From positions 14,682,275 through 14,746,274 of the forward strand of contig NC_134032.1 in NCBI RefSeq assembly GCF_964204645.1: a DNA stretch of 64,000 nucleotides, given 5' to 3'. Below the pieces are notes generated by a model. The model did no database searches. It had not been told where the DNA came from and saw only the letters and a list, made by a program, of their open reading frames with translations. Below, in pieces: positions 1 to 41,207 of this stretch (its first letter is position 1; every line of letters begins with the position of its first letter). The DNA comes from Tubulanus polymorphus (taxonomy: Eukaryota; Animalia; Nemertea). A program made the translations under genes and the position numbers.

Positions 1-26
1 AGATCACGGTTAGCTTCAATACGCAC

Positions 27-3000
27 CTTCGAGAAATGTTTTTCGATATCCTGCATCAACAGATCGAGTCGTTTGATACCCGGGTGATTGGCTATTTGAA
101 CATGAATTAAACCGTTATCAGCGACGTGTGTGACGACAACCTCTAGAATGCCACCCTCCTAGAAATACACAAAATATTAACAATTTATCCTAGAAATACA
201 TGGAATATGAATACTTAAACCTGGAAATTTTTGACTAATCACTTCGCTTTCAATATCATAAACTCGAATAGCAATGTTTTAAAGTTTCGCAAATATTTTT
301 CTAGATTTTTCTAATTGCGTGAGTTTTCGAGGAAAGGATGAACCCCGATACAAATTGACCATCCTCCCTCGGCAGGGATTAGAACCAGATAGAATCGTTA
401 GAGTTAGCAATGGCATGACCCCCTGCCAGAGTAGACCCGGTGCGCAGGGACATGCGCAGCTTTGCTGCACGAAAACTTGCTGCACCAATCAGATCGCTCG
501 TTGTATAATCGCTTAGGTAAATTTCACGGTGGAACTATAAGTGGGAAAACCCAGGCTAAAATAAAACAGGATTTCTGATTGGTTAATAATGACATCATCT
601 AAGCTGCGCATGTGGTCTAGTGTGGCAGGGTTTCGTACCGCGGCAATCTCAATGTCATCAGGTTCGAATCCCAGCCGGGGGAGGTAAGAAATTGACGGGA
701 AATACCTCCGGTAAAACTGGACTAAACTCTTCGTCGTTGACCGTGTTAGTGATTAGATCGTTGACATTGACGTCTGCTGCAGTAGACGTATCGTACAGTA
801 ACACCGACAGACGATCCGACCGATCTAAAACCTCAGCTATGAATGTTTTATTCAGCAGTATCTGAATAAGGGTCTCGATGACGCTGTCTTTCTCGTTGAA
901 ATCCTCGAGTCCGGCCAGCGAGCACGTCACCGCCTGGAATAATAAACGAAAAACATTTTAATCAACTCAGTTTAAAACAGTAACTGATTAAACATAACCA
1001 ACTTAACTCTGTTTTGAGGGTAACTGTTCTCCAGAGATATCATTCTGTTTTGAGGATTACACGTTCACTACCACCCTGATAATACAGTGCTGCCCCCTAG
1101 AGTTCTACTTCGAATTTACTCCTATGTTGCCAATACAGCTATATCGTAGTGCACTATCGTTCAAATATTGACCAATCAGCACCGATTGAATTTTTTCTGT
1201 AGCAGCTAATTTTGGTTGAATAAACTAATTTCAAACGTGAGTATAAAAATTTGTTTGATTACTACATATTATATGAAGATTAACATATTTGAGGAGGACA
1301 CCCTCGGGCCCTAAGAGCTGTATCTGAAGGGGGATGCCCTCGGTTGCAACTGGAAGAACAATTGTGTCCGCTGAAACATGAATGCGCTAGGGAATAGACA
1401 GGTTTCTGCTACCGCGTCGCAACAAGTTGCTTGAGGTTGTAAGGCAGACCAACGCTAAATTCCAACAAACAAACAAACAAACAATACAAAATTGAAATCA
1501 ATGAGAGCAAACTCAAATTTATTACCATATACTACAATATATGAGCGAATGATGAAGGAAATCAGAAAGAGAAAGAAAATCCTGGGTCGTTGCGCGTATT
1601 GTTAGTTACCAGTATTTCATTATGATTGACAAGTGCTGCCATTTTTCAAGAGGATAATTACTAATTGCATCAATACACCGCAGTGCGATGTTTTTCAAGA
1701 GGATAATTACTAATTACATCAATACACCGCAGTGCGATGTACTAGCAAAATCCATCACTGATTTATACACCGCACTGAAAGGTTTAAGTAAAGTTATTCA
1801 GCACTGATTTATACACCGCGCTGAAAGGTTCAAGTAAAGTTATTCAGCACTGATTTGTACGACTTGCCACAATTCAATATCTTCCTCTAAACTGCCTCCG
1901 TAGGCGACCGTTTCATGCCAAATTTTCTCCAATTTCAAATTCGCTTTTTTCGCTATTTCGGCGAGAATTTCCATGAATCCTAAACCGCTACCGAAACAGA
2001 TAACGGCCCGCCCGCCCGGACGTAGGTGTCCGTGGGCTCCCGTTATAAAACGGCCGATAGCCTCGTAATCTCGGTCAATTAAAGAGCGATCCAACATCGT
2101 TAATTCATCTGCTCTATCGACGGGCTCGTACAGATATGGAGTATGCCAGAAAATTAAATCAAACTTTTCATCTTCGCGAATATTTCCGTAAACGTCGGAA
2201 TATCGCACGTCTCCCGGGACTGCGTAACGCTCAAAATTCACTTTAGTATTCTCTAAAGCTTGTCGATTGATGTCGGTCGCCAACACGTAACTAAGCTTCG
2301 ATTTATTGCGTAAATAATAAACGACGCTGACGCAACCAGTACCGCATCCGATTTCTAACATTCTAGCGCCATCTACTGTCTCTTGCGGTAGATTCAGCGC
2401 CATCGACTCGTAACCCGTCATATAGTAAACGTCGTGAAAATTTACGAACTTCTCGCCGCAAAATTCAAACTCGTGTCGACCTCCGTCTTGTGATATCAAT
2501 TTCTCATTTACTCCAAGCAGACGCCTACAGTCCGCCACGATCTCATTAGTTTTGTCCAATTTCTTCTGATCCAAAGAAGTCGTCATTTTAACAGTTTCTC
2601 CACAAAGCAGTTTATGAATATAACAAGTAAAAATGTGCCTTTATCATTCATTTGTTATCAGAGGTCAGAGTTTTATCTTTAATGTATAAATTGATGCTCT
2701 AGTTTTGGTTCATTCTTATCTCGTTTGACTTTTACCTCCTCATAAAACCAATTCAGCGATCGATCTTCAATCTCAAAAACCAAACCAAATATCGACGGAG
2801 AAAATTAATGGAACATCTAAGAGTGTGCAGATATATTATTTGAAACCATAGGATTTAAATGAAGTGTTAGTTTGATTCTATTGTATTTAATTTCACAGTT
2901 TATAACAGAAAATGAATAAACTGTGATACTAAAACACCAGTCAAATGAGATCAGCTTTTACATATATCACACTATGACTGAACATTGGAGTGAACTGGCA

Positions 3001-6000
3001 CCATTCATGACTGCATGTTACATGCACCAGTCACTAGTGACATGTATCTCTACCAAACCACTAACCCTAGGTCACATGACCACCAGTGACATCATACTCC
3101 TAGCCAGCCAATCAAACCCTAACCCTAGCCCTAGGTCACATGACCACCAATGACATCATGACTCTAGCCAGCCAATCACATATAAACCCTAGGTCAGCTG
3201 ACCAACTGTGACTTGTAATCCTAGCCAGCCAATCACAGATCACCCCTAGGTCAGCTAAACATCTGTGACATGTAATCCTTCTCAGCCAATCACAGTTCAC
3301 CCCTAAGTCAGCTGACCAACTGTGACATGTAATTAGAAGTTTTGTTGAGAGAACAGAAAGCTTTGTCAGTCCCCACAGAAATCCATTCACGCTCTTGGGA
3401 CTTTTAGAGTTATCACTTACATCATTGATACAATCAAAAAAAAGAAATGAATGCATCATTAAATATCTTTTTTTTCATGAATACACAATACAAGAGAACT
3501 TTATTGAACTCAATAAAATTTAATAATGAAAATAATTCAAGAGTGTAATACAATGAAGAACAGACAGGTGACAGTTATATAATAATGCAATCAAAAGGGC
3601 CGGCAGCGCGTAACGCACACAGGGCTCTGTCACCAGAAACCCAGAGTGGTCCAAACGCTTGTCGTATAAACTCAATACAGCTCAAGATCTCCGGATAACA
3701 TTTCACTGTTCGTGCTAGATTTTCACCAGTTTCATATAATTCACTTCATTTGCTTTTTCATTCAGCGCCCTCTACTGTCTGTTCTGGTAAATTCAGCGCC
3801 ATCGTATTGTTTCCCGTCAAATAGTAAACCTCGTGAAAATTAACAAATTTCGCGCCGCAAAATTCAAACTCGCGTCGACCTCCGTCGTCTGCTATCAATT
3901 TCTCATTTACTCCAAGCAGACGTCGATAGTTCTCAACAATCTCATCGGATTCGTCAAATTTTTTCTGGTCCAACATGGGCTCAGTAATTACTAATTATAT
4001 AAGATTTTAGGGATGATTTGGTAAAAGTTACACAGACACTTGCCACAGTTCTACATCGCCGGATAATATTTCACCTAAGAAAATTACTTCATGCCAAATT
4101 CTCTCCAACCTCCGGTTCACTTTCAGCGCTTTTTCCTTAAGAACTTCTATAAATCCAATATGGCTTCCGAAACTGAAAACTGCCTTTCCGCCCGGGCGTA
4201 GGTGAGTTTGGGCCCCAGTAATATAACGCCCGAGAGCCTCGTAGCCGGGGTCGGCCATAGCTCGATCTAACATCGTCAAATCTCCGGCTTTTTCAATCGG
4301 GAGATAAAAACAAGGAGTATGCCAGAAAATCAAATCAAACTTTTCATCTTCGCGAATATTTTCGAACACGTCGGAATATCGCACGTCTCCCGGGACGGCG
4401 TAACGCTCAAAATTCACTTTAGTATTCTCTAAAGCTTGTCGGTTGATGTCGGTCGCCAACACGTAGCTAAGCTTCGATTTATTGCGTAAATAATGTACGA
4501 CGCTGACGCAACCAGTTCCGCAACCGATTTCTAACAATCTAGCGCCATCTACTGTCTGCTCCGGTAAATTCATTACCATCGAATCGAAACCTGGGTAATA
4601 ATATACATTTCGAAAATTGACAAATTTTTCGCCGCACAATTCAAACTCGTGTCGACCTCCATCGTCTGCTATTAACTTTTCATAGATCTCAGCGAGACGT
4701 CGCGATTCCGTAAACATTTCGTTAGTTTTCTCCAATTTATTCTGATCCAAAGAAGTCGCCATTTTAACAGTGTCAGTTTATCGAGTAGAAACAAGCGATC
4801 ATCAGTATATGGACTGAGAGCGCAGTGCCTCGAGTAGACACAATTAGATATGATCATAGTTCAGTTATGAAAATATATCATAGTTACGCTAAAAAACATT
4901 TATGCCTTGTTTCTCCTTTCTGGTGAGTCCACCTTGACCCCACCAGCTGCCTATATACCCTGCTAACCATAACAGACCCAGGGGCCGGTTCCTCAGTCGA
5001 GACTTAAGTCCAAAAATGGTCTTAAATTTTAAGACTGGTCTTAAGTTGTTGGATTGGTTATAGAACTAAGACTTAAATTGGTCTTAAGCCTAAGCCATGA
5101 CTATGGAACTGGGCCCAGCAGTTTTAGAAATGAACTGATTACAAATTTCATCACAGTTAACAACAGTGAACCACCAGCCGATTAGGAGAAACAAAGTATC
5201 ATTTCAGTTTAGCCTTATATAATGTCTGACCTGATTCATGTGTCTGGCGCTCTCATTTTTTTTAAAATATCAAGCTCATCGTCCTATTTAGTTAATTCAT
5301 AGATAAAGGGGTCATCTAAGAAAATCATCTGACAAGAGTAAAGTTCAATATTTCAGGGTTGTACCAGTATTTGCTGGGCCCTGGCTGAAGAGGTGCAGGG
5401 ACCCCCGCTGAGACCTATAGATAAGTTTGGGTTGCACAGTTTCCATAGTAAGATCTACATTATGAAGTGAATGAAGATAACAAGAGGCCCATGGGCCCAT
5501 ACTGCGGTATTAAGTACCCGCTCTCATCTACCAGATAACGAACGAGAAAAATGCGATCGAATAACTTTTTGGACCATTAAATCAGAAATCTGGTGACGCT
5601 ACGTTGTGGGGAATAATTGAAACATTTTTTTAGTCATTTTCAGCTGTTTCTAATGTTTTACGTGAACGGAGTGACAATTTGAAGTTAATATGAAAATGAG
5701 AAGAGTCGGCGCTTTTTTTTCGTACTACTATTTTTTCGATCCATTTTACTAGCATTGGCGAGATACGACTTTTAGAGTCTCAATTTAACATTCTTCATAG
5801 ATAAATATTATTGATTCTTATTGATTTATTCCTGTATCGATGTTATTGTAGTTCCTCCACTGGAAGGATTTGTAATGAACAGAGTTCTCGGAGATTATTT
5901 TGAAACGCTTTTATACAAGATATTTGTATCAATAGACGTCAACCAATGCTGAAAATGATAAAACAAATTTAATTCCCCATCTACATAATGCATACAGCTC

Positions 6001-9000
6001 GAGATCTTCGCACAAAATTTCGCTGTAGGTCAAAGTTTCGTGCCAGATTTTCTCAAGTTTCATATTCACTTCATTTGCTTTTTCGTTCAGAACTTCAATG
6101 AATCCATAACCGCTTCCGAAACTAAAAACTGCCCTCCCGCCCGGGCGTAGATGTTTGTGGGCGCCGGTTACAAAATGCCCGATAGCCTCGTACGCGGGGT
6201 TGACCAAAGCTCGGTCCAGCATAGTTAAATCTGCAGCTTTATCAATCGAGAGATAAAGATAGGGAGTATGGCAGAAAATCAAATCAAACTTTTCATCTTC
6301 GCAAATATTTTCGAACACGTCAGAATATCCGACGTCTCCCGGGACGGCGTAACGCTCAAAATTCACTTTAGTATTCTCTAAAGCTTGTCGGTTGATGTCG
6401 GTCGCCAACACGTAACTAAGCTTCGATTTATTGCGTAAATAATGTACGACGCTCATGCAACCAGTACCGCATCCGATTTCTAACATTCTAGCGCCATCTA
6501 CTGTCTGTTCCGGTAGATTCAGCGCCCCCGTGTTGTAACCCGGGTGATAATACACGTCGCGTAAATGAACGAATTTCACGCCACAAAATTCAAACTCGTA
6601 TCGACCTCCGCCGTCTGCGACCGATTTCTGATTGACTTCTTGCAGACGTCGCGATTCCGTCAAAATCTCGTTAGTTTTCTGATTCAAAGAAGTCGTCATT
6701 TTAACAGTATTTTTTTTTCTTCAGTCTATTGAGAGTAAGAACAATGCACAAGCACAGAATACACCGTAAAATGCTATTCGCTTGAGAGACAGCTGTGTGT
6801 GTGTCTGATCAGATTTATAGCTACGTCTACACTAGCATTTTGTACCCGGGGGGGGGGGTTATGCGTCTCCGCTACTATGCGTCTCCGCTACGCTCCAAAC
6901 ACGGGTTCAATGCAGAGTTTTCTGCAAAACCCGGGTTTTAGAAACCCTTCTTGAAAGAGAAGAGCACACTTCGCATTGAACTCGCGTTTGCCTAAAACTC
7001 CACATTTTTTGCTAGCGTAGACAGTGAACCCGCGTTCAATGCAGGATTCGGGCGCCACAATTGACCTTGAACTTGCACTACAGATGTTGATTCTTATTTA
7101 CCGGAACTGTGTTAGGTGTAGACGCTACTCACAGGTTTTCATTGGACCCGGGTATGTTGAAACCCAGGTACAACGCGCTAGTGTAGACAAGGTTTATGCG
7201 TATACTGCGGTTGTAGTGTTTTTTTTTTTTAAATCAGGTAACTCATTCCATGGGGGACCAGTTATTCAGTTCATTCATTCATAAGTCCAGGGATTATCTC
7301 AGAAAATTGGTTTTACAAACTGCTGCAGTTGATCACACCATCTGATGGGATAGCCAGTAACACGTTGGTCGAGGTCATCGATCAGTTTCAGCTTATCCTT
7401 CTTACTCGGTGAAACTACAAGTCTGTAGGGTCGGTTCAAAAGGGTCAGTTCCTAAATTCAACTGAAGAAAAAAGTTTGACCAAAACCAGTTTATTTTCTA
7501 AGCATTTTACACTTTATTTTTGTTATACAAGAGATATCATATTCACTAACAAATAACTATAGCGTTTAGCAGTACATAATTCTAATTAAGGAAAATGTTA
7601 ATTACATGGTCCCCACAGTTATATGAATTCAAAATTTCCAGGTTTTTCCCAAGAATTTCACGGGTGATTTTTCAATTTTCCCAAATGGAAATGAACACAT
7701 ATCGTCATGCAACAGTCAACATTTTAGCGGTGACAGGTTGATAAAGGTGATTTTCAAGGGAAATTGCTGAAGAGAGCCGCCCTTGGCAAATGCGATACGT
7801 GAAATGTAATGAATTTCCCAAGTATTTCCCTGATTTGAGGAAAATTTTCAAATTCCCAAATATTTCTAAACCGGGAATTATCATTTCAAAATTCCAAAGT
7901 TTTTCCCAATTTCCCCGTTCTGTGGGAACCATGTTATGAATACGTATCATACGGAATAAGCAAAGAAAAGCATCGAAATAAACGTGCAATGTATGCAATT
8001 GCGTCATCTATTACAGCATCAATAAAATAACTAAGATAATCCCCACTTGCCACAGCAGTTTCGTCCGATACCTCATTAGCATATCGTTTAAATATTTTAT
8101 GTAAAGTTACTCGGCACTGATTGGTTCAACCTGCCACAGTATGACATCCTCCTCTACAGTACTGCCGTAATTTATCATTCCGTGCCAGATTTTCTCCAGT
8201 TTCAAATTTTCTTTCTTAATCTTTTCGTTCAGAATTTCAAAGATTCCAAATCCACAAAAAACTGCCCGCCCGCCCGGGCGTAGGTGCCCGCGGGCTTCCA
8301 TTATATAACGACTGATAGCCTTGTACCCGGGGTCGGCCAATGACCGGTCCAGAATCGTCAAGCAGTCGGCTTTATCAATTGGCATGTAAACACAAGGAGT
8401 ATGCCAGAAAATCAAATCAAACTTTTCATCTTCGCGAATATTTTCGAACACGTCGGAATATCGCACGTCTCCCGGGACGGCGTAACGCTCAAAATTCACT
8501 TTAGTATTCTCTAAAGCTTGTTGGTTGATGTCGGTCGCCAACACGTAACTAAGCTTCGAATTATTACGTAAATAATGTACGACGCTGACGCAACCAGTTC
8601 CGCATCCGATTTCTAACATTCTAGCGCCATCTACTGTCTCTTGCGGTAAATTCAACGCCAACGAGTCGCAACCCGTCATAAAGAAAACATTATGAAAATT
8701 AACAAATTTTTCTCCGCAAAATTCAAACTCGTGTCGACCTCCGTTTTCTGTTATCAATTTCTCATTCAATTCTAATATCTGACGACCTTGAGTCAATAGC
8801 TCCGGTACGTCGAGTTTTTCCTGATTGGCAGACGCCGTCATTTTTAACAGCAGTTCTAATAGAGTTTCAGCGAACGTAATTCAGTGCTATCTCAATAAAC
8901 GTTGAACAGTAGATGGCAGAAAAAAAACCAGCGAAAATAAATAAATAATATAAATACCATAAATAACAAAATATAGGACAAATTTCATTATCCAGCTGTC

Positions 9001-12000
9001 ACAGACGAGTCTAATATGGCTCGTGTCTAATTTGAGAGCGCTCGATACTAAACACAAAGCGAAGTGTGTCACTTCTGGAACCTGTAGCAATGACCCGCGC
9101 TAAAATTTGGAAAAAGTTGAAGGCCATGAGTAATGACTGCATAGAACAAACTACATTAAATAGACGTTTTCTATGAAATAAATTGACTTACACTTGAACT
9201 GGATGTAACAGTCAACAGACATTAGACGAAACAGTCGGGCCAAATTGGCACGGAACAGGCTCGCGCCAAATTTGGCCCGTGCCTAATAAGAGAGCGCGTT
9301 CACACGTAAACCATTCACTCGATACTAAACAATGCTCAAACAAAGCGAAGTGGATCATTTCCGGTGCCAGTTGCAATTCAAACGCAATCATTTGTCTGGT
9401 GCTAAAATTTGGCTCGGGCCTCGTCCAACATTTTTGGTCGGGCCAAATTTGGTCCGGGCCCAACAGGCTCGGGCCCATTTTGCACCCGTGTGAACAGTTG
9501 TTCCGGGCCAAATTTGGCCGGGCCAAATATGCTCGTGTGATAGCGGCTACAATCAACTGACATTAGACAAAACAGTCAACAGACATTAGACATTAGACAA
9601 TCAACTCGTGTAGATTTTCACACACTTTTGTCTCGCGTTAAGCATAAATAAATCAGGGCCCGGTTCCATAGACAGGGCTTAGACTTGACTTAAGACCGGT
9701 CTAAGACAAACTTAGTTCTATAGCAAATCTAACGACTTAAGACCTGTCTTAAGGTTTAAGACCACTTTTGTCTCGCGTTCAGCATAAATAAATCAGGGCC
9801 CGGTTCATTAGACAGGGCTTAGACTTAAGACCGGTCTAAGACAAACTTAGTTCTATAGCCAATCTAACGACTTAAGACCTGTCTTAAGGTTTAAGACCAC
9901 TTTTGGTCTTAAGTCTTCACTATGGAACCGACCCCAGGGCCGTATCTCGATAAATTGTGTCCACGTTTTTCCCTAAAGTTACTCATCAGCGCTTATCTGT
10001 AGGATTTCCCATAATTCCAAGTCTTCAACCATTTCTCCAATTTTCACCAATTCGTGCCAAATTTTCTTCAGTTTCAAGTTTGCTTTTTTCGCTTTATCAT
10101 CGAGAACTTCAAGCATACCGTACGCGGCGGAGTAAGCCATTATAACCCTGCCGCCCGGACGTAGGTGTCCGTGGGCTCCGGTTATAAAACGCCCGATAGC
10201 CTCGTAGCCGGGGTCAGCCATAGATCTGTCCAACATCGTTAAATCATCAGCCATTTCCCTCGGCACAAAAGTATAAGGAACGTGCCAGAAAATCAAATCA
10301 AAATTTTCATCTTCGCGAATATTTTCGAACACGTCGGAATATCGCACGTCTCCCGGGACGGCGTAACGCTCAAAATTCACTTTAGTATTCTCTAAAGCTT
10401 GTCGGTTGATGTCGGTCGCCAACACGTAACTAAGCTTCAATTTATTGCGTAAATAATGTACGACGCTCATGCAACCAGTTCCGCATCCGATTTCTAACAT
10501 TCTAGCGCCATCTACTGTCTGTTCCGGTAAATTCAGCGCGATTGGATCGAAACCGTCCAGATAAAAAACATCGAAAAAATTAACAAATTTCACGCCGCAA
10601 AATTCAAACTCGCGTCGACCTCCGTCTTCTGTTATCAATTTCTGATTATTTTCAACCAGTTCTCGGCCCTCTTCTAACATCGCTGTCCGTTTAGCAAGTT
10701 TTTCTTGATCGAGAAAAGTATCTGCCATTTTGCGAAGGAGTATTACTAACGATAAGGATAGTAGTTAGACAGACGTTCAGACAGCAGCCGTAGACAGATA
10801 TTCAGACAGCAATCGTAGACAGACCTTCAGACAGCAATCGTAGACAGACGTTCGGACAGCAGCCGTAGACAGATATTCAGACAGCAATCGTAGACAGACC
10901 TTCAGACAGCAGCCGTAGGCAGACGTTCAGACAGCAATCGTAGACAGACGTTCAGACAGCAGTTGTAGACAGGGATTCAGACAGCAGCCGTAGACAGATG
11001 TTCAGACAGCAATCGTAGACAGACGTTCGGACAGCAGCCGTAGACAGATATTCAGACAGCAATCGTAGACAGACGTTCAGACAGCAGTTGTAGACAGGTA
11101 TTCAGACAGCAGCCGTAGACAGACGTTCAGACAGCAGCCGTAGACAGACCTTCAGACAGAGTCGTAGACAGATATTCAGACAGTTGCAGGTAGTTGGCAG
11201 CGCTCGCTGTCACACTACATCAAATGAGCAGTCAACAAAATTTTGGAAGCATAAAAAAACAGCAATCACTGACAAGTGACATAAACCACACACGTACCGC
11301 GCGCTAGACCCGGATAGGAATAAAAAAATCTACTCAATTTAAAAAATAATTTATCAATAATCTGATAATGAAGTGACCCGAGAACCAGGCTTAAAAAAAC
11401 ACGTTGAAAAGTCCTGAATTGCAAGCGATTATTTCTGATAATTATTATATCCACAGCTGGAATTTCACTTTAAGTAGATTTTCTAAAGAATTGAGTTATA
11501 TCCCACAAAATATCAATAGAATATCAATAGAATATAAATGTGACAGGCGTCTGGTTATCATCACACTGCTGTATTTGAAAGACTCTTCATTCGACACGAT
11601 ATAAAATTCAGAAATCAATTAACGTTTTCGTATAGAGTTTGATAGTTTGATATCTGTTTTATATCAATATTGTAGACAGCTACGTATTCAAGTCTTTTCA
11701 TTCGAATATTCGAGTTCTAAAGGGTATTATTAATAAATCTTAACCCTCCCTCCCTCCATTCTCCACGAAAAAACAACCACCAAACTGCTACTGCTATTAT
11801 ATCTGTTCAGTTCGCAACTGTCTATATGCTGTACATATGAGCCCGAACTAACAAACAGTTTGCCAATTAAGGAGAAATTGGCGATGAGATTTTCATTTTA
11901 TTACCGACTTATCAAAATTCGACAGATTGTGATAATTTTCACAAAAAAATAATCCGCATTTTTAAAAAGATTTTACGATAATTTCGATGAATTATCCGAT

Positions 12001-15000
12001 ATTGTATACAGTTATTGATCGCCGATTGTAAGAATGTTCCACAGTTCTGCGTCTTCGTCTACAGATCCGATAAACACCTTTTCGCTCCAAAATTTCTCCA
12101 GTCTCAAATTGGCTTTCATCGCTTTTTCGTTAAGAACTTCGAAAACTCCGATGGCGCAACTGAAACCGAATATCGCCCGCCCGCCCGGGCGGAGGTGTCC
12201 GCGGGCTTCGGCGATAAACCGACCGACAGCCTCGTAGCCGGGGTCGGCGATACTACGATCCAACACGCTCAATTCGGCAGATTTATCAGCAGACACGTAC
12301 AAACATGGAACGCACCAGAAAATCAAATCAAACTTTTCATCTTCGCGAATATTTTCGTAAACGTCCGAATATCGCACGTCTCCCGGGACGGCGTAACGCT
12401 CAAAATTCACTTTAGTATTCTCTAAAGCTTGTCGGTTGATGTCGGTCGCCAACACGTAACTAAGCTTCGATTTATTGCGTAAATAATGTACGACGCTGAC
12501 GCAACCAGTTCCGCATCCGATTTCTAACATTCTAGCGCCCTCTACTGTCTGTTCCGGTAAATTCAACGTAACCGAATCGTATCCGGGAAAATGAAAGACG
12601 TTTTGAAAATTAACGAATTTCTCGCCACAAAATTCAAACTCGCGTCGACCTCCGGCGTCTGCTATCAATTTCTCATTCAATTCTACCATTTGACGACCTT
12701 CGGGTAGCAGGGCGTCGGCTTTGGCCAATTTTTCCTGTTCGGAAGAAGTTGCCATTTTTGAACGGGTATCAAGCAGAGTTCTAGTATAGACGATTCACAT
12801 TAGATACTACAGAACTGGTTCATGTAGTCACAATGCTTAATACGCTGATAACTATAACACAGATCGTTTTGAAAGCAAAATGTAGGACAAAAATATAATC
12901 GACTGAATAGACGGAATACTAAACAGAATACAGTCAGCAGATCGAGGGGTGGATCTATGGTCTGATTCGGATCGAGGGGCGGATCTACGGGCTGATTCGG
13001 ATCGAGGGGCGGATCTACGGTCTGATTCGGATCGAGGGGCGGATCTACGGTCTGATTCGGATCGAGGGGCGGATCTACGGTCTGATTCGGATCGAGGGGC
13101 GGATCTACGGTCTGATTCGGATCGAGGGGTGGATCTACAGTCTGATTCGGATCGAGGGGTGGATCTACGGTCTGATTCGGATCGAGGGGTGGATCTACAG
13201 TCTGATTCGGATCGAGGGGATGGATCTACGGTCTGATTCGGATCGAGGGGTGGATCTACAGTCTGATTCGGATCGAGGGGATGGATCTATGGTCTGATTC
13301 GGATCGAGGGGTGGATCTATGGTCTGATTCGGATGGGGGGGTGGATCTACGGTCTGATTCAGCGAGGGTTGCATCCATGTAATATAGGGCATATCACATA
13401 CTGAAGTGCACCGCGACTCATCGGAAAATGTGAACTCAGAACCCGCTTAGTTCGGTTGACCTGGGACTGGGAAATCCTTCCCGAATAATATGAAATACGA
13501 ATTATATGCTCTCATCAGAATGGAAATAACTTAGAAGGGACTGAAATTTAGTCCGAAATAAATGAAAATCCGAATAAAACCGATATGAATTAAGCAAGTT
13601 ATACCATACAGAGAACTAGCTATGAATTTAAACTTTTCAGGAATCCATTACTAATAATTTATCTTTTTTTCCTGGTAAAATTTCAGGGCAACAAGACATT
13701 CAAAGGAGGCGCACACAAACCCCTGCACCCTCTGTAAAGGAGGCGCACACAAACCCCTGCACCCTCTGTAAAGGAGGGAGGCGCACACAACCCATGCACC
13801 CTCTGTAAAGGAGGCGCACACAACCCCTGCACCCTCTGTAAAGGAGGCGCACACAACCCCTGCACCCTCTGTAAAGGAGGCGCACACAACCCCTGCACCC
13901 TCTGTAAAGGAGGGGCACACAACCCCTGCACCCTCTGTAAAGGAGGCGCACACAACCCCTGCACCCTCTGTAAAGGAGGCGCACACAACCCCTGCACCCT
14001 CTGTGAAGGAGGCGCACACAACCCCTGCACCCTCTGTAAAGGAGGCGCACACAACCCCTGCACCCTCTGTAAAGGAGGGGCACACAACCCCTGCACCCTC
14101 TGTAAAGGAGGCGCACACAACCCCTGCACCCTCTGTAAAGGAGGGGCACACAACCCCTGCACCCTCTGTAAAGGAGGCGCACACAACCCCTGCACCCTCT
14201 GTAAAGGAGGCGCACACAACCCCTGCACCCTCTGTAAAGGAGGCGCACACAACCCCTGCACCCTCTGTAAAGGAGGGGCACACAACCCCTGCACCCTCTG
14301 TAAAGGAGGCGCACACAACCCCTGCACCCTCTGTAAAGGAGGCGCACACAACCCCTGCACCGTCTGTAAAGGAGGCGCACACAACCCCTGCACCCTCTGT
14401 AAAGGAGGCGCACACAACCCCTGCACCCTCTGTAAAGGAGGCGCACACAACCCCTGCACCCTCTGTAAAGGAGGCGCACACAACCCCTGCACCCTCTGTA
14501 AAGGAGGCGCACACAACCCCTGCACCCTCTGTATTCATAAAGTATCAAACACATATCGCAAATAAAAACCTAGCTATATAAAATGTCATGAATCTGATCG
14601 AGTTGGAAAAGTTCTGAAAAAAAAAATTTTTTTAAATTTAAAATTTGAATTTACCTGATACGAGAGAGTGTTGAATTGCGGTTTAATCGGAAAAATCTGT
14701 TTGACGTCGATCGTATCCGTGTCGCCGTGATCGAGAAAATAACAAACAACGCCGTCGCCTTGACGACTGATGACCTTGATTCTGGATACGACGCCGTCGT
14801 TGAGCATGGCGGCGTAAACCGACCCGACGCTCGGCGACGACTCGCACGCGTACTTGTTACTACGGTAATAATCGCTCATCTCGACCTCGAGGTCGTCGAG
14901 TAGATCCTGAAATTCCAACGAAACATCGTCTCAGTTATCTATTCGTTATTAACCCTTTAGACTCGAGATACTGTTTATTAACCCTTTAGACTCGAGATAC

Positions 15001-18000: not shown

Positions 18001-21000
18001 TCACTCTCAAGTCAAAAATTCGACTTGAGCGGAGTCTACTGTATCATCTAACTCAGATATCACTCTCAAGTCAAAAGATCTGACTTGAGCGGAGTCTACT
18101 GTATCATCCAACTCAGATATCACTCTCAAGTCAAAAGATCAGACTTGAGCGGAGTCTACTGTATCATCCAACTCAGATATCACTCTCAAGTCAAAAGATC
18201 TGACTTGAGCGGAGTCTACTGTATCATCCAACTCAAATATCACTCTCAAGTCAAAAGATCAGACTTGAGCGGAGTCTACTATACCATCCAACTCAGATAT
18301 CACCCTCAAGTCAAAAGATCCGACTTGAGCGGAGTCTACTGTACCATCCAACTCAGATATCACTCTCAAGTCAAAAGATCCGACTTGAGCGGAGTCTACT
18401 GTACCATCCAACTCAGATATCATTCTCAAGTCAAAAGATCCGACTTGAGCTGAGTCTACTGTATCATCCAACTCAGATATCATTCTCAAGTCAAAAGATC
18501 CGACTTGAGCCGAGTCTACTGTACCATCCAACTCAGATATCATTCTCAAGTCAAAAGATCCAACTTGAGCTGAGTCTACTGTACCATCCAACTCAGATAT
18601 CACTCTCTAGTCTAAAGATCCGACTTGAGCGGAGTCTACTGTACCATCCAACTCAGATATCACTCTCAAGTCAAAAGATCCGACTTGAGCGGAGTCTACT
18701 GTACCATCCAACTCAGATATCACTCTCAAGTCAAAAGATCCGACTTGAGCGGAGTCTACTGTACCATCCAACTCAGATACCACTCTCAAGTCAAAAGATC
18801 CGACTTGAGCGGAGTCTACTGTACCATCCAACTCAGATATCACTGTCAAGTCAAAAGATCAGACTTGAGCGGAGTCTACTGTACCATCCAACTCAGATAT
18901 CACTCTCTAGTCAAAAGATCTGACTTGAGCGGAGTCTACTGTACCATCCAACTCAGATATCACTCTCAAATCAAAAGATCCGACTTGAGCGGAGTCTACT
19001 GAACCATCCAACTCAGATATCACTCTCATGTCAAATGATCCGACTTGAGCGGAGTCTACTGTACCATCCAACTCAGATATCACTCTCAAATCAAAAGATC
19101 CGACTTGAGCGGAGTCTACTGTACCATCCAACTCAGATATCACTCTCATGTCAAAAGATCCGACTTGAGCGGAGTCTACTGTACCATCCAACTCAGATAT
19201 CACCCTCAAGTCAAAAGATCTGACTTGAGCGGAGTCTACTGTATCATCCAATTCAGATATCACTCTCAAGTCAAAAGATCCGACTTGAGCGGAGTCTACT
19301 GTACCATCCAACTCAGATATCACTCTCAAGTCAAAAGATCAGACTTGAGCGGAGTCTACTGTACCATCCAACTCAGATATCACTCTCAAGTCAAAAGATC
19401 AGACTTGAGCGGAGTCTACTGTACCATCCAACTCAGATATCACTCTCAAGTCAAAAGATCCGACTTGAGCGGAGTCTACTGTACCATCCAACTCAGATAT
19501 CACTCTCAAGTCAAAAGATCCGACTTGAGCCGAGTCTACTGTACCATCCAACTCAGATATCACTCTCAAGTCAAAAATTCGACTTGAGCTGAGTCTACTG
19601 TACCATCCAACTCAGATATCACTCTCAAGTCAAAAGATCCGACTTGAGCTGAGTCTACTGTATCATCCAACTCAGATATCACTCTCAAGTCAAAAATTCG
19701 ACTTGAGCTGAGTCTACTGTACCATCCAACTCAGATATCACTCTCAAGTCAAAAGATCCGACTTGAGCGGAGTCTACTGTACCATCCAACTCAGATATCA
19801 CCCTCAAGTCAAAAGATCTGACTTGAGCGGAGTCTACTGTATCATCCAATTCAGATATCACTCTCAAGTCAAAAGATCCGACTTGAGCGGAGTCTACTGT
19901 ACCATCCAACTCAGATATCACTCTCAAGTCAAAAGATCAGACTTGAGCGGAGTCTACTGTACCATCCAACTCAGATATCACTCTCAAGTCAAAAGATCCG
20001 ACTTGAGCGGAGTCTACTGTACCATCCAACTCAGATATCACTCTCAAGTCAAAAGATCCGACTTGAGCCGAGTCTACTGTACCATCCAACTCAGATATCA
20101 CTCTCAAGTCAAAAATTCGACTTGAGCTGAGTCTACTGTACCATCCAACTCAGATATCACTCTCAAGTCAAAAGATATCTGACTTGAACGGAGTCTACTG
20201 TACCATCAAACTGAGATCAGAGGAAAGTTTAATAGTTTAATGATACACACCTCTTTTGGAAGAATTCCAAACAACGAACATTTTATTGCTTGAACAGGAA
20301 AACTACAAATGTTCTTTAATATTCGTTTCAGTTTATCTTTAGGGCGATATTCTGTATTTCCGTAATCAATGAACAAAACTTCAGCTTCTGGTTCAAACTA
20401 TAATGAAACAAACACAAATAAACCGTTTGGAAAATCTTGAATATTTCGCGGGACTCAGGATCCAGTTCGACAGTTGTGAGTTAGAGTTAACTCAAATCAA
20501 GATATGTTCAGGCGTTGAGAAGACTTACTTTTGCCGAAGTGCGAGTAGATAGTATTTGAGCTCGGTACCATTGCTGATCCATGGAATATTGAGCCACACA
20601 ATACGTTCCCTTCACCAGCGTCTGAAGACACTTTGGACTGGCTCGTTTCTAGAAAATACCAACCAACAGGGGTCAGTTACTGAAAGGCTCTCAATACCAC
20701 GGTGCATGGGGCAGTGACTGAAAGGCTATAGTTTGAATACCACGGTACATGGGTCAGTTACTGAAAGGCTATCAATACCACGGTACAGGGGTCAGTTACT
20801 GAAAGGCTATAGTTTGAATGCCACGGTACAGGAGGCAGTGACTGAAAGGCTATAGTTTGAATACCACGATACACCGTTGATCGATGCGAGATATTTCCAA
20901 CTATACTCACGTCGTAAATATCACTGATGGCCGCCATGATCTCATCGATGTTCGAGTCACGACGATGAACGTAGAACTCTTGACAATTTTCGTACAACGA

Positions 21001-24000
21001 TAAAAACACTTGAACACTTTCACTAAAACAAACATAAACAATTATAGAAATTAGTTGCTTTTTCCAAAAGTTGGACTAGTAGTCACTGATAAGTATAGCA
21101 TGCAGCCAATCTTAGTTGGACTAGTAGTCACTGATAAGTAGAGCATGCAGCCAATCTTAGTTGGACTAGTAGTCACTGATAAGTATAGCATGCAGCCAAT
21201 CTTAGTTGGACAAGTAGTCACTGATAAGTATAGCATGCAGCCAATCTTAGTTGGACTAGTAGTCACTGATAAGTAGAGCATGCAGCCAATCTTAGTTGCT
21301 TTGTCCACAAATTGGACTAGTAGTCACTGATAAGTAGAGTATGCAGCCAATCTTAGTTGGACTAGTAGTCACTGATAAGTAGAGCATGCAGCCAATCTTA
21401 GTTGGACTAGTAGTCACTGATAAGTAGAGCATGCAGCCAATCTTAGTTGGACTAGTAGTCACTGATAAGTAGAGCATGCAGCCAATCTTAGTTGGACTAG
21501 TAGTCACTGATAAGTAGAGTATGCAGCCAATCTTAGTTGGACTAGTAGTCACTGATAAGTAGAGCATGCAGCCAATCTTAGTTGGTTTTTTCACAAATTG
21601 GACTAGTACGTGGTAGTCACTGATAAGTAGACCTTGCGCCCAATCTATCACATAGTCAACATGGACTTTTGACTAACTACGACTGAAACTAAATTATTCT
21701 CTGACTTCCCAGCGTATTTTTTTATGATACTCTGACTTCACCTAACTCTGTTATATTTTAGCATCTGGTACGAGTTAAGACGAAGTTTATACTGTAATTG
21801 TTGAATATTCGAGGCGCGAACGTAGTAATCAGGAATGGACTGAAATTGCGTCAACTTTTAGCAGACGTAACTTACCCGATTCCGGGGACTCGCGGCGGAG
21901 GTATTTCCGTTTTTTCATTCTGGAAAGAAAACACGCATCAGAATAAAAATTAGTTTCGTTGAAAAAAAAATTAATTTCCAATCCTATGAACTCTTCCTGA
22001 GCCCAGTTTCACGAAAAAGTTTAAGCCTAAAACGGTTAGGTTTGAATTGTTGTCCTCATCAAAAACATGAATTAACCAATAGCGATTCCATCGATAATTC
22101 GAGTTTAACTTTTTTGTGAAACTGTTCCTGGTGTCATATTACCATCGATTTCTACATTATGTGGTAGATAAATATGATTGAATACTCACAGCAAACACGT
22201 ACGAATTATTGGTCACTGAGATGGTACTCTGTAGAACGGGGTATAAAATACATGTATTTTTTGCTCCGACTGGACTGAAATAGAAAATGTATCATCAGCA
22301 ATCGAACTAACTACGCCGGGATTAGCTTCATGGGCCGGAATTAGCTTCATGGGGCAGGATCAGCGCCACTGGGCCGGGATCAGTTTCAAGGGGCAGGATC
22401 AGCGCCACTGGGCCAGGATCAGTTTCAAGGGGCAGGATCAGTGCCACTGGGCCAGGATCAGTTTCACTGGGCTGGGATCAGCTTCACGGGGAAGGGTCAG
22501 CGCCAATGGGCTGGGATCAGCTTCACGGGGCAGGGTCAGTTTCACTGGGCTGGGATCAGCTTCACGGGGAAGGGTCAGCGCCAATGGGCTGGGATCAGCT
22601 TCACGGGGCAGGGTCAATTTCACTGGGTCGGGATCAGCTTCACGGGGAATGGTCAGTGCCAATGGGCTGGGATCAGCTTCACGGGGCAGGGTCAGTTTCA
22701 CTGGGTCGGGATCAGCTTCACGGGGAAGGGTCAGTGCCAATGGGCTGGGATCAGCTTCACGGGGCAGGGTCAGTGCCACTGGGTCGGGGTCAGTGTCACA
22801 GGTCAGGGTCAGTGTCACGGGGAAAAAACCAGTTCTCTTGCTTCTATGAGTTTGAAATTTTCTTTAATAAAATGTAATTATTTCTCTTTGGAGAAAATTA
22901 AGTTTTTTCTTTCGTTTTAAGATTTTCTTACTTTTCCATTTTAACGATATCCATCCATTCTTCGAGTCGATCCTCGATTCGATCGGGTAAAACTTCGTTA
23001 TACTGTTCTTTGTACATCACCTCGAGTCGAGTCGCGAAAAGTCCGTTCGGTTTCGTAGCAACCAACTACAACAATACGCATGGAGAAAATCAACGCGATA
23101 AAAGAAATCGAGAAACGCACGAGACGTTTCCTCAAATTCATACTCACATCTCGGACTCGACTTTTTACGGTTTCAAGGTCGGCGGAGCACGTTAATCTCG
23201 AACTAATTATTGGACCAAATTCGTCTGAAAATTCATCATCAAACTACAGCAACGGTTGACATTCATGAAAATTTTTTAAGTCTTAAAATGATTAATTTTA
23301 AATAGAAGACCACATTGAGAACATGAAGTTGCCAATAGCAAGAGAATTTCTAAGTTTCGTTTTTTTTGTGAAACCCGGTTCCGAATTGCAATCAAGATAC
23401 AACTGGAATATTCCAACTGTCGAACTTGAATCCCGAACTGTGGGAAATCCTGAACTGTGGACTTGAATCCCAAACTGTGGAGGAATCTTGAACTGTGGAA
23501 CTTGAATCTGGGACTGTGGAACTGAAATCCCGAACTGTGGAATTGAATCCCAAACTGCGGAACTTGAATCCCGAACTGTGGAACTTAAATGCTGAACTGT
23601 GGAACTTGAATCTGGAACTGTGGAATTGGTATTGTGGAACTGGATCTTACCTTCGTTATACCCGTCAAGGTTCATATCCTGGAACGACGGACCTCGCGAA
23701 GCGTTCGTCGCTTTCGTTCGTTTAGTTTTTGGTCGCACACCAGATGGCGCTTTCATTTTTTCTACTGCGTCTGCCGAGAAATAAACACAATGTCAAGGTC
23801 ACACATTCGCTAGGTTGAATAGGTGTCAAGGTCATAATCAGTACTCACCAGCAGTAATATCGAATGCGATGCAAGCGTTTTTTGCGGCGAGGTTTTCTGC
23901 GGCTTTTTTTGACGGACAAGTTTCTGAAAATTTATGGAAATATTTAACATTTGCGACTTATCACTTCAAAACATCATACAAATTGATAGATAAGAATCAG

Positions 24001-27000
24001 AGGTAGGGCTCGGCCTTGACCACGACTGTTGAGTCCAGTGCCAAAATATTTAACTGATACATGATAACATTTTCAGACACTTAGACGTATACATAGACCT
24101 GAAGCATATTGCACAGTAACATTGTATATTCAAATCTATGCTTATTTCAGTTCTATAAACTAACACCTTAAAACCAGTGTAAACTCATTTCGGTTCTATA
24201 ACCAATCTAACATCTTAAGACCAGTCTAAACTCATTTTGGTTCTATAACCAATCTAACAACTTTAGACCAGTCTAAACTCATTTTAGTTCTATAACCAAT
24301 CTAACAACAACTTAAGACCAGTCTAAGCTCATCTTGGTTCTATAACCAATCTAACAACTTAAGACCAGTCTAAACTCATTTTGGTTCTATAACCAATCTA
24401 ACAACAACTTAAGACCAGTCTAAGCTCATCTTGGTTCTATAACCAATCTAACAACTTAAGACCAGTCTAAACACATTTTAGTTCTATAACCAATCTAACA
24501 ACTTAAGACCAGTCTAAACACATTTTAGTTCTACAACCAATCTAACAACTTAAGACCAGTCTAAACTCGTTTTAGTTCTATAACCAATCTAACAACTTAA
24601 GACCAGTCTAAGCTCATTTTGGTTCTATAACCGATCTAACAACTTAAGACCAGTCTAAACTCATTTTGGTTCTACAGCCAATCTAACAACTTAAGACCAG
24701 TCTAAGCTAATTTTGGTTCTACAGCCAATCTAACAAGACCAGTCCTGTGATTCAAGAACAACTTAGGTTACTAATGCGCAACTGAATCGTGAGCCTATTA
24801 TGCGATTTCGACCTCGTGACACTTACGATTACATCCAAATGTTTGCCCGTGGATTCTTACTGAACTGATGAAACCATTTTTTGACGGGAGCGTATTGAAC
24901 ATCAAACCGGCTGAAATTAAAATATTTTAAAATGCGATTTAAAGAAAACTAGAGCCCGGGGTCAAAACTGAAACATGAGGACCCAGTTCCACAGTTGTGA
25001 GTTAAGATTTAACTCTCCGAGTTAAATGAACTAACTTTAACTCAGAGTTAACTCTAACTCACAACTGTGGAACTTGGCCGAGGATTCTTAATTACAGGTT
25101 ATCAAAATGATCTCTTTTAAATAAATATTTGAACGAGATATCATTATCAAACAGGGTCCCTATAGATCAGTCATTCCAGAATTCAAGGAGAAGATTTCAA
25201 ATTTCGAGGAGTGTATGTATCAGTTTCAAATCCCAATTAAAGTAAACTCCTCCTAAATCGGTACGATTTATCTCAGTAAACTGTTAATTCAGTCCTTAAT
25301 AAACTTAGTTTCTAATTCAGTTACCGCTTAAACCATTTAATTTAGTGGAATATGCTTGTATCAGGCCTATGACTGACTCAGAATCAGAGGTAGGGCTCAG
25401 CCTTGATCACGACTATTGAGTCCAGTGCCAAAATATTTCACTGATACATGATAACATTTTCATTTCTCTACTGACCAGGCCTAAAACCTTAAAACCTTAA
25501 AGTTGCCAATTTCTCAAAATTCAAGGAGTTTTCAAGGAATTTTGGGCATTTTGCTAAAATTTAAGGATATTCAAGGACCTTGAAAAACATTTTTGGTTTA
25601 GAAGTTTTCGACAAGGAGTCGAAGGGAACCTGAATATTTGAATGAGATATCGCTATCAATATAAAACTCACTGACGATTCCTTTTTTTTGCACGTAACAA
25701 TGAAGTAAAGACTTGAAATTTGTGTGTAGCTCATCCACGAGGAAATCGGGAACCGCTACGTTCCGTTGTATCGGTCGTTGATTGGTGATCGGTCGACCCC
25801 AGGTGGACGCCGACGGGCGTGGCTGCGGCGGCTGCTGCTGCTGGACCTGATTCGAATCTCCTGTTTGTGAAAGAAACGATAAAATCACTTAAGAAGGTAT
25901 TGAACAGTTTTAAACATTCTTATTTCATGAACATCATTCTTACAATTATAACATGAAAATCCTACATCAGAATGAAAAACTTGTCAAATTCTAAATTTGT
26001 TTTGATTTTTGTCACTGTTTTTATATTGCTCAATGTTTATATTCCTCATAATGTTGTTATAGCGCCAGGATTCCTGAAGGCGACTATGAGTTCGAAAGCC
26101 GAATAAACTAAATTAGCTGAACGAAACATTTCTGGTTCTTTTTACTCTTAGTGTACAGGGATTTTATATTATCTTTATACCAGGGACTCAGAGTGTTTCA
26201 TCAATGGTTATAATGAAGACAACATCAGTATTCCTGAAGATGACTATTAGGATATAGTCGAAACGTTGAATAAACTACACTAGCTCAAGGAATACAGTAT
26301 TCCTGAAGATGACTATTAGGATAAAGTCGAAACGTCGAATAAACTACACTAGCTCAAGGAATACAGTATTCCTGAAGATGACTATTAGGATATAGTCGAA
26401 ACGTCGAATAAACTACACTAGCTCAAGGAATACAGTATTCCTGAAGATGACTATTAGGATAAAGTCGAAACGTCGAATAAACTACACTAGCTCAAGGAAT
26501 ACAGTATTCCTGAAGATGACTATTAGGATATAGTCGAAACGTCGAATAAACTACACTTGCTCAAGGAATACAGTATTCCTGAAGATGACTATTAGGATAA
26601 AGTCGAAACGTCGAATAAACTACACTAGCTCAAGGAATACAGTATTCCTGAAGATGACTATTAGGATATAGTCGAAACGTTGAATAAACTACACTAGCTC
26701 AAGGAAAAATTTCAGACTCTCTTTATTCTTAGTCAGCAGGGATTATTCTATTTGAAGAGACACTTACGCCATTTGTTGTTCATATCATTTGGTGACTTTG
26801 AGCGGAATCTAGAAGGAGCTTCACCACTGCCGGCACCAGGCTGAGCGATTCTCTAAACGTTGAAGAACAAAAAGATGTAACATATGAAGAAATAAAGACA
26901 GAATCTTTTATCTTGAATACTTGAAAGATTTTCGGAATACTTTCATAAAAGGCAACAAGGATTCAGTGTCGTGACATGGGGCATTACAGTCCACTAGCTC

Positions 27001-30163: not shown

Positions 30164-30757
30164 CGTTGCGCTGATCTGTTGTTGTCGGTAGTTTTGTCTA
30201 AAAAGTAAAGACCACACGATTTAATTTTCCAGCAGGGACAGACTCAGAATGAAAGCAGTTCTGAATAAGCCACTTGGTGGCATCTATGGTACAACTTGAT
30301 TGTAGGTAGGCCTAGTAGGTATAGGCCACTGCCCCGCGCGAGGACTCCCGAGCCTATATATCCGCAAAATAGCGTTTACTAATATAATGCCGCATTATTG
30401 GCAAAATATCCACTTCCTAGACCTAGAATCAAATGTCACAATTTGATGGCAACTTAAGATGGCACAGACTTTTAATATATAGAAGACGTGAAGTCCCTAC
30501 TACCGTTTCATAACTTTCACACGTGACAGAACCTCGGCAGCCTGACTATTAATGTAATGTGATGTGAGCCTGATGTCATCTGGAATCGCTGACTCGTCAA
30601 AATTGTCTTACCAAAAACAGATAATACGAAGGACTTCAGATAATGAAAGCGATTCATTGAAATTAGTACCTCGTAATCAAAAAAACCCACCAGTACAGAT
30701 TGAGCAATTCGAATGAGCCGCACGCGTCTGTTCTGCGCGTGCTTCATAAACCTTTAC

Positions 30758-39400: not shown

Positions 39401-41207
39401 TTGAAGTTTCTAAACGCGTTTAAATATGGAATGTTTGGCGGCAAATTCAGTAAGTTGGGATGTGTCGATGTTGATGTTTTCAGGCGCCATCTGTTGAGAA
39501 GTTACAAGAAGAAGCAGATGGAATTAACGACGACGACGAGAATGAACCCCCGAATTATTACCGCAGGCGCCGTCGTTACAGGAAGTACGTTTAATTTACA
39601 CCAGGGGGTGCTGGGTAGTGCATTGTAATCACAAGAGGGTGGGCGGACAGTGTAATGAGGATAACAATTCAAACTTAACTGTTTTAGGCTTAAACTTTTT
39701 CGTGAAACTGGGCCCTGGGGCGGGTAGTGCATTTTATCAACACCAGGGGGCACTCATTCATTAATGTGCCTTGTGTTCAGATTTTAAAATATTAACGTTG
39801 TTTTTATTTCGTGCAGCGATTATTCGAACTACAGAAGAAGAGATCGCAGACCGAACTCCGAAGGAGGCGACGGAAGTCAAGGCGAAGAGGGAGGTAGCCC
39901 GTCTCGAGGTGGCAGCAGCGGAGGAGCAGGTGGCGCCACCGATAAAGATGGCCGCGTTAAACGTCGTTTCGGTCGTCGTAGATTCAGCCGTCGCAGACGC
40001 AGAACCAACTCTAACAAAGTACGTGCGAACTCTCCTCCCTCACCACACACACACACACATGTAACTCCTCTTTCTCAAACCTCTTTTATCTCTCCCTCGT
40101 CCTTCCCCTCTCTCTCTCTCACCCTCACTCTCCCTCTCTCCCCTCACTCTCACCCTCTCTCAACCTCACTCTCACCCTCTCCCCTCACTCTCTCCCCTCT
40201 CTCCCCCCTCACTCTCACCCTCTCCCCTCACCCTCTCCCCTCACTCTCCCTCTCTCTCCCCTCACTCTCTCACCCTCTGTCCCTTTACTGCTTCGAGAAT
40301 GCTCTGGTAATTCATGATAGTAGAAAAAAATGAGAAATTGCTCACTCTCTCCCCTCACTCTCACCCTCCCATCACTCACTCACCCTCACTCTCTCACCCC
40401 CATCTTTCTCACCCTCTACTCCTCTCTTTCTCTCACCCTCTACCCCTTACTGCTTTAATGCTCTGGTAATTCATGATTATAGAAAAAAATGAGAAATTTC
40501 AAAGCGTTGAGTTGAAAAAAACAATTACATTGAATCAATTTCATTTTTTTGTGAATCGATTTTCCCTTCGTGAATGAAGCGTTGTTAGAGAGATCAGACG
40601 TCGAAAGTGAAATAATAATTGTTGATGTATTTTATTTCAGGAGAATGATGAAACTGGAGGATCCGAAGGAGAACGAGTCGAAGGAGAGGAGGGCGAGAAA
40701 AAAACCGACCGTCGTCGAAGACCGTTCCGTCGTCCTAATCGACGCGGTAACAGCCAGACGGAGGGCGGTAACAGCGATTCGGCCGGCGACGGTGAATCGC
40801 CGAGCGGTGCAGGTGGCGCCGGCGGTCGACCGCAGCGTCGCTTCCCGCGTACGCGCACGTATTCGGTGTACGTCGGCGGTCTGCCTCCGTCTCTACGCGT
40901 CAGCCATTTTAAGAAGGAGGTCCGCAACAAAGACGTCAACCCGATACAGGTCGTGTGGCACGGCAACAACGGTCACGCGTTCCTCGTATTCATGGGCGAG
41001 GACGAGGCTCACTCGGCGCTCGATCGACTCGGCGACTTCGAGATCACCAACGACAAGGGTAAGAAGAAACTGCGTATCGAGGTAGCGAACCGGAGCCGTC
41101 AGGGCGGCGGCGGCGGCGGGACGGGAGGTAAGTCTCGCGGAGGCGCGGGAGGTGAAAGCGGCGACGGAGGCGACGAGGCGACCGGCAGCGGTCACGACGA
41201 CAACTAA
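33435..41207 (+). CDS. MTHFSD: Methenyltetrahydrofolate synthetase domain-containing protein (5-FTHF cyclo-ligase-like domain plus C-terminal RRM), 564 aa
   Basis: Exons 33435-33501, 35274-35377, 35750-35863, 36461-36665, 37763-37961, 38474-38609, 39484-39584, 39817-40018, 40641-41207 splice in frame. Motifs ANFPLPVYQRIPNVK, PDKPQE, LLVPTPRLRT, KCATSQG, GSVAVS, RIGKGDGFFDLEYAMM, EHDIRVDYVITPT, AGKDVRL; RRM VYVGGLP...GHAFLVF. Confidence 0.95.
34188..34352. mobile_element. Harbinger-like MITE
   Basis: ggatcattaatttattacgta ... tacgtaataaatgaatgatcc inverted termini. Confidence 0.6.
36119..36245. mobile_element. MITE family A copy with CTG target-site duplication
   Basis: CTG|gggccagttgcacagtc ... 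gactatggaaccggccc|CTG, flanked by termini of related elements. Confidence 0.75.
37456..37728. mobile_element. piggyBac-like MITE (opposite orientation to 15847-16308)
   Basis: cccttt..cagtgc ... gcactgaaaggg|TTAA and shared internal sequence. Confidence 0.8.
40062..40450. repeat. CT-rich low-complexity tract in MTHFSD intron
   Basis: ctctcccctcactctcacc repeats. Confidence 0.85.

Follow-up and report, generated by a model that had tools for sequence, protein, structure and literature searches.

Why an intron of a gene named after a germ-granule protein should hold a row of intact methyltransferase reading frames, where these came from and what they might methylate are the questions raised by a locus of the palaeonemertean ribbon worm Tubulanus polymorphus. 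The stretch analysed, referred to below as the window, comprises 64 kb (C8:14682275-14746274, where the "C" numbers denote the chromosomes or contigs of this species). The intron (window positions 934-14654) belongs to a gene for a TDRD7B-like Tudor protein and contains six open reading frames (ORFs), MT1 to MT6, which encode putative class I S-adenosylmethionine (SAM)-dependent methyltransferases. The explanation favoured here, with reasonable though not strong confidence, is that they form part of a bacterial-derived and tandemly expanded panel of small-molecule N-methyltransferases, which would have a shared cofactor module and diversified substrate pockets and would owe their position inside the Tudor gene to chance.

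The six ORFs are all intact and all located on the minus strand, which is also the strand of the host gene, namely MT1 (1840-2586; 248 aa, with a homogenised core at approximately 2146-2403), MT2 (4028-4762; 244 aa), MT3 (5929-6699; 256 aa, with a divergent C-terminal tail), MT4 (8107-8841; 244 aa), MT5 (9979-10728; 249 aa) and MT6 (12012-12755; 247 aa). Each of them matches the Pfam MTS family (PF05175) with E values of 1e-11 to 1e-12 and scores of 42-48 bits, for a gathering cut-off of 23; the five others share 66-73% identity with MT1, and motif I (LEIGCGTG) is invariant across the six copies. An AlphaFold model (pLDDT 89) displays alternating strands and helices, and its structure matches are class I methyltransferases. 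On the basis of the Pfam cut-off, motif I and the predicted fold, MT1-MT6 are assigned to the class I SAM-dependent methyltransferases of the MTS family. A seventh, broken copy (3675-3973, minus strand) was recognised by homology; it consists of the N-terminal 70 residues or so (3764-3973) and a short C-terminal remnant (approximately 3675-3765), the SAM-binding core having been deleted. Self-comparison of the intron revealed that homology between the units ends about 12 nt or less from each ORF, the spacers being unrelated to one another or made of local minisatellites. The content of the intron is thus as announced in the preliminary description of the window, which had reported six intact ORFs of 244-256 aa and one broken copy, all on the host strand and separated by non-homologous spacers.

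The limits of the intron were deduced from the host protein. The exon at 14655-14906 (minus strand), which corresponds to residues 699-782 or so of XP_074656038.1 and encodes a partial Tudor domain, ends with FNTLSYQ and is followed by the donor gtaaat at 14654; the next exon (706-933, minus strand) opens with AVTCSLAGL behind the acceptor ttccag and completes the domain. Alone, the upstream exon covers positions 31-113 of the 121 positions of the Pfam TUDOR profile and, when it was searched singly against 1.84 billion representatives, its top match was XP_074656038.1, a RefSeq 'tudor domain-containing protein 7B-like [Tubulanus polymorphus]' whose sequence is unbroken across the 14655>933 junction. 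In a tblastn search, this protein spanned the locus from window position 30199 down to C8:14673517, which lies 8.7 kb ahead of the first position of the window, and its residues 693-783 and 779-858 mapped to the two flanking exons, with no match in between. The methyltransferase ORFs are therefore nested in an intron, since the flanking exons belong to one annotated host mRNA. Both the single GT..AG intron proposed earlier and its exceptional length stand, as the protein model reads across the junction and, on the tblastn map, no other intron of the gene comes close to 13.7 kb. Near its donor side, about 120 nt into the intron, a 33-bp minisatellite of 25 copies was detected by self-comparison (13702-14533) and is the source of repeat ORFs.

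Reads and contigs of public runs were mapped to positions 1-6000 of the window; the intron status of 934-14654 is that given by the public protein model. Within these 6 kb, an RNA-like run from this species (run X2) provided a 2547-letter contig spliced at 157|705 (CT..AC on the plus strand, equivalent to GT..AG on the gene strand), which joins the subsequent host exon (27-157, minus strand) to the exon bordered at 705/706. This spliced contig ends at 936, that is, at the acceptor, and other contigs continue from there into the intron, a configuration compatible with a splice branch point. A 2015 run labelled as RNA had no match in positions 1-6000, host exons included.

As for the identity of the host, the preliminary description had called it TDRD7. 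NCBI annotates it as TDRD7B-like, and its protein has a LOTUS domain and four Tudor stretches; the domain layout, with one LOTUS only (E 1.4e-10) and one double-stranded RNA-binding domain (dsrm), differs from that of classic TDRD7, and the gene is TDRD7-like by its NCBI name. A six-frame scan of the genome for LOTUS domains did not detect the host gene, the domain being visible only in the spliced protein.

The six ORFs look like stand-alone genes and not like host exons, because no splice-acceptor-like sequence was found ahead of any of the six ATGs, because the context preceding the ATG is alike in most copies, usually ending with aaa (ctgttaaa in four of the six), and because poly(A) hexamers occur downstream of five of them. 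The possibility that they are alternative terminal exons of the host was rejected on the first of these grounds. The array would thus correspond to independent intronless genes for small cytosolic enzymes, each presumably transcribed on its own.

A six-frame search of the whole genome revealed that the family is not restricted to this intron. Approximately 24 intact intronless copies are distributed over nine chromosomes (C2-C8, C10 and C11), of which about 18 are located outside the intron. The largest cluster is on chromosome 8, where two copies (C8:14658087 and C8:14663260) lie on the same strand as the array, at a distance of 9.5-15 kb past the stop codon of the host gene, and another one lies 310 kb away. 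The ends of MT5 are nearest to those of the two downstream copies and of a chromosome-10 copy. One paralogue, P0001, is a RefSeq protein of Tubulanus polymorphus and is encoded letter for letter on C10. Two subfamilies can be distinguished by motif IV. Subfamily A, which includes all six intron copies, has F-W-H-(T/V/P/A)-P-(Y/C/N), with the exceptions of MT3 (FCHTPY) and MT6 (FWCVPC); in the intron the motif is found as WHTPY, WHTPC, CHTPY, WHVPY and WCVPC, so that the catalytic asparagine is replaced by histidine or cysteine. Subfamily B, present elsewhere in the genome, has F-W-N-x-P-F, in the form WN(V/A/F)PF. Five copies of subfamily B at C6:4807140-4867700 are very recent duplicates, with a proportion of synonymous differences (pS) of 0.02-0.05 in the ends; there, a few changes give some pairs among them ratios of nonsynonymous to synonymous substitution rates (dN/dS) that approach or exceed 1. 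The earlier proposal of a lineage-specific cassette in the intron is consequently retained in part: the family is lineage-restricted and its substrate-side regions have diversified, but it is not confined to the intron.

The way in which the copies have evolved differs between parts of the gene. The dN/dS values were 0.20-0.33 in unsaturated pairs and mostly 0.2-0.5 in the diverged ends, well below 1, and the ORFs are therefore under purifying selection; a value near 1 together with a lack of expression had been named beforehand as what would speak against the proposal. In the core (codons 66-147 or so), pS is only 0.03-0.19 among the six intron copies, falling to about 0.03 around codons 101-130, and reaches 0.5-0.7 in the ends for most pairs. 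The same core values (0.03-0.19) were obtained for the full set of nine C8 copies, to which the one located 310 kb away belongs, compared with 0.20-0.47 between C8 copies and copies on other chromosomes. In the tree of the core, the nine C8 copies are on one side of a branch. In the tree of the ends, they are interleaved with copies from C3, C5, C10 and C11, and a C8 clade was rejected (difference in log-likelihood of 199; approximately unbiased test, p 5.6e-8). Since the core follows genomic location, the ends do not, and the core pS is low, gene conversion has occurred among linked copies. This is concerted evolution confined to a single gene segment and to copies that are linked, and the near-identical centre of the six proteins is due to gene conversion and not to protein constraint alone.

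The conversion tract extends from about codon 62 to codon 145 and its border is at DLIFW, right before the variable catalytic residues of motif IV; in the predicted structure, it corresponds to strands 1-4 with motifs I-III. No signature of GC-biased conversion was observed, GC content at third codon positions (GC3) being about the same in the core and in the ends. Same-strand genes in a host intron and conversion among linked copies are likewise found in nested intron genes and in concerted tandem families in general. What differs here is that the converted segment corresponds to the cofactor-binding module and ends at the catalytic motif, and no precedent for such a border was found in the literature searched. 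Conversion among linked copies would thus keep the SAM-binding Rossmann half near-identical in DNA, whereas the N-terminal helix and hairpin, the catalytic residues of motif IV and the C-terminal half would stay diverged under purifying selection, and the copies may be viewed as a set of enzymes that have the cofactor module in common and differ in their substrate pockets.

The closest relatives of the family appear to be bacterial. A single-sequence search yielded two Tubulanus, three actinomycete and three metagenomic proteins, and a profile search yielded 2434 matches, among the best 120 of which every named one was from Tubulanus or from bacteria. No other animal was present among the named matches of the former or among the best 120 of the 2434 matches of the latter. 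A search of a protein-cluster atlas with the paralogue P0001 returned mostly bacterial clusters, a result that serves as a lead only. In a tree of 94 sequences with SH-aLRT support, the Tubulanus family and P0165, a homologue from a eukaryote-like contig of a public run, form one clade (support 98), the sister of which is a single long-branched metagenomic protein, followed by an actinomycete clade. The other named members of the enclosing clade (support 99) are bacterial (actinomycete), and this clade is well apart from a large group of mostly unnamed metagenomic proteins, the few named members of which are planctomycetes.

The family was most likely acquired from bacteria by an ancestor of this ribbon worm, the direction being suggested by these sequence relationships, and subsequent duplication would have given rise to the approximately 24 intact copies. 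The GC3 of the worm genes is 0.45-0.49, similar to that of the host, and any transfer is therefore old. A bacterial-type methyltransferase fixed in an animal nuclear genome is already known in bdelloid rotifers, namely an N4-cytosine methyltransferase. That enzyme belongs to another family and has another substrate, and the worm family has in addition been expanded extensively in tandem, with gene conversion over part of the gene. No description of this family, nor of the transfer of a methyltransferase to nemerteans, was found in the searchable literature, in agreement with the initial remark that no such system had been described.

Among these closest relatives are actinomycete 'methyltransferase domain-containing proteins' (Streptomyces, Micromonospora and Dactylosporangium), which share 33-41% identity with the worm proteins as well as their length, fold and motif I, and which also have a non-canonical motif IV (FWSSNY, FWNSNF and YWHSNY, the last with a histidine). 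They are single-copy genes of uncharacterised function located in operons or biosynthetic clusters, whereas the worm genes are intronless and nuclear, have a host-like composition and exist in approximately 24 copies. A fused PabAB-like gene overlaps with the homologue in Streptomyces and Dactylosporangium, and in Streptomyces and Micromonospora the homologue is found amid genes for a type II DAHP synthase, PhzE/PhzD/PhzG-like proteins, aryl-adenylating enzymes and non-ribosomal peptide synthetases. By analogy, this context points to the tailoring of chorismate-derived aromatic units. In addition, the pair formed by the methyltransferase gene and the fused GATase/chorismate-binding (PabAB-like) gene that it overlaps or abuts lies behind a GAF/HTH_30 regulator and is kept in Streptomyces and Dactylosporangium; this actinomycete pair itself seems to be uncharacterised.

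The profile and structure searches that had been recommended at the outset assign the proteins to class I MTS methyltransferases, with scores below all NCBIfam cut-offs and with N-methyltransferases as the best structural matches. With a predicted model as query, the best Foldseek matches in the PDB were the carbamoyl N-methyltransferase 9l4q, RsmC, GenN and HEMK2/KMT9, all of which are N-methyltransferases. The best structural match, Asc-Orf2 (9l4q), and the gentamicin N-methyltransferase GenN (PDB 5u0n and others), matched with E values of 5e-13 to 3e-11, are actinomycete N-methyltransferases involved in the tailoring of small molecules; their identity to the worm enzymes is just 16-19%, from which no substrate can be inferred. 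Taken together, the fold and the genomic context of the bacterial relatives make small molecules the most probable substrates for N-methylation by these enzymes; aromatic metabolites, either amines or acids, are possible ones.

The alternative that survives best, although it is considered unlikely, is that the enzymes methylate macromolecules (glutamine or lysine residues of proteins, or amino groups of rRNA, tRNA or DNA), as do HEMK2/KMT9, PrmC and RsmC. Indeed, HEMK2/N6AMT1/KMT9 and PrmC (HemK) have the class I fold and the MTS domain in common with the worm proteins, the most similar NCBIfam families are HemK2/MTQ2, PrmC and RsmC, the Foldseek matches to HEMK2-TRMT112 and RsmC have TM scores of 0.56-0.62, and subfamily B retains the N-x-P-F form of motif IV. 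However, every curated cut-off was missed by a wide margin. The identity as HEMK2/MTQ2 was rejected with 52.7-59.1 bits for TIGR00537, for a curated cut-off of 87, and the identity as PrmC/HemK with 44-50 bits against 199 for TIGR03534 and 28-33 bits against 115.5 for TIGR00536; the PDB sequence search returned no HEMK2 chain at E<=0.01. The motif IV of the HemK/HEMK2 type, NPPY or (D/N)PP(Y/F), is missing from all six copies, and subfamily A as a whole has histidine or cysteine in place of the catalytic asparagine. Furthermore, the closest relatives in sequence are located in natural-product clusters, and a set of about 24 paralogues with diverged pockets would be unusual for housekeeping modification enzymes, one copy per animal genome being expected for genes of the HEMK2/PrmC type.

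A second alternative, judged improbable, is that of a cassette coupled to its TDRD7-type host and co-transcribed with it in the germline or eggs, for example by processing from the host pre-mRNA. It could be invoked because all the intron copies are on the host strand within one intron, and because the RNA-like run that contains the spliced host mRNA covers the intron and its ORFs too. Against it, most members of the family are located outside this gene, the lack of acceptor sites before the ORFs shows that they are not alternative exons, and coverage in that run is alike for ORFs and spacers. Germline or egg expression along with the host, tentatively advanced in the preliminary description, therefore finds no backing, given that nothing was found to tie the enzymes to the host or to the germline and that the family is spread over nine chromosomes. 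The nesting looks incidental, since the same family sits at many other loci, including just downstream of the host; it is probably an accident of the site where the array expanded and not a functional coupling. Six copies and one pseudogene would simply happen to occupy, on the host strand, the longest intron of the TDRD7B-like gene, with two more copies just downstream.

That the ORFs are non-functional relics, contamination or an assembly artefact, as their absence from the public proteome and the broken copy might suggest, is highly improbable, as the six frames are intact with dN/dS well below 1, their GC and GC3 resemble those of the host, the array is flanked on both sides by exons of one annotated host mRNA on a 16.7 Mb contig, and three additional runs of this organism, which stem from a single study, also contain the stretch. 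With members on nine chromosomes, the methyltransferase genes are physically integrated in the host chromosomes and are not contamination.

Several observations nevertheless weigh against the proposed panel of independently transcribed, bacterial-derived small-molecule N-methyltransferases. The substrate class is derived from fold similarity and from the genes that surround distant relatives (33-41% identity). Regarding transcription, the read contigs over window positions 1-6000 displayed no separate methyltransferase transcripts, and the RNA-like run covers ORFs and spacers equally, as intronic pre-mRNA would, with a contig depth that cannot rank expression; none of the six ORFs is in the public protein set, where 3 of the approximately 24 family members are annotated. 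Regarding origin, the single long-branched metagenomic sister protein points to no particular donor lineage. Moreover, two homologues, P0165 and P0276, from the public runs SRR5023860 and SRR5025426, lie on contigs with AT-rich, eukaryote-like flanks and have an acceptor-like polypyrimidine-AG directly before each ATG; they share 39-40% identity with the worm family and 60% with each other, and their motif IV is FWN/FFN-IPF. To judge from these contigs, the family is wider than Tubulanus and occurs in at least one other eukaryote. Several dates of transfer would therefore be compatible with the data, and even vertical descent with massive loss is conceivable.

Other features of the window were also noted. 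Long minisatellites are present in other host introns (18085-20125 and 21292-22920) and account for repeat ORFs in both orientations. At 40570-41216 on the plus strand, opposite in strand to the host gene and past its 5' end, lies an ORF that has an RRM-like stretch and a tail rich in Gly. At 400-800, 1600-1800 and 5000-5200, read depth is in the thousands, with many loose ends, in all DNA- and RNA-like runs, and these stretches are dispersed high-copy repeats; a repeat at approximately 640-700, beside a host exon, has a tRNA-like 'gggattcgaacc' box. At gathering scores, an Rfam scan was negative for RNA families throughout the window, and at E<=1 nothing was detected in 26000-27000.

In summary, the acquisition of a bacterial enzyme, its tandem expansion, the nesting of genes and partial gene conversion are each phenomena of a known kind, and no description of this instance of their combination was found in the searchable literature. 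The link to the germ-granule gene is probably positional only. The sharp split between a cofactor module homogenised at the DNA level and diverged substrate modules makes this young enzyme family a clear case, in nature, of gene conversion that is only partial. Should the enzymes be active, they would represent an animal family that is so far undescribed, is probably of bacterial origin and has been multiplied into a set with differing pockets. In a phylum known for its chemical defence, they would then be a candidate source of methylated metabolites made by the animal itself. More tentatively, and with a likelihood that is clearly below even, the approximately 24 enzymes, with one SAM-binding module maintained by conversion, differing substrate pockets and asparagine replaced by histidine or cysteine, could be a bacterial-derived toolkit run by the worm for tailoring small molecules in secondary or defensive chemistry, in which the border at motif IV would itself have been selected.

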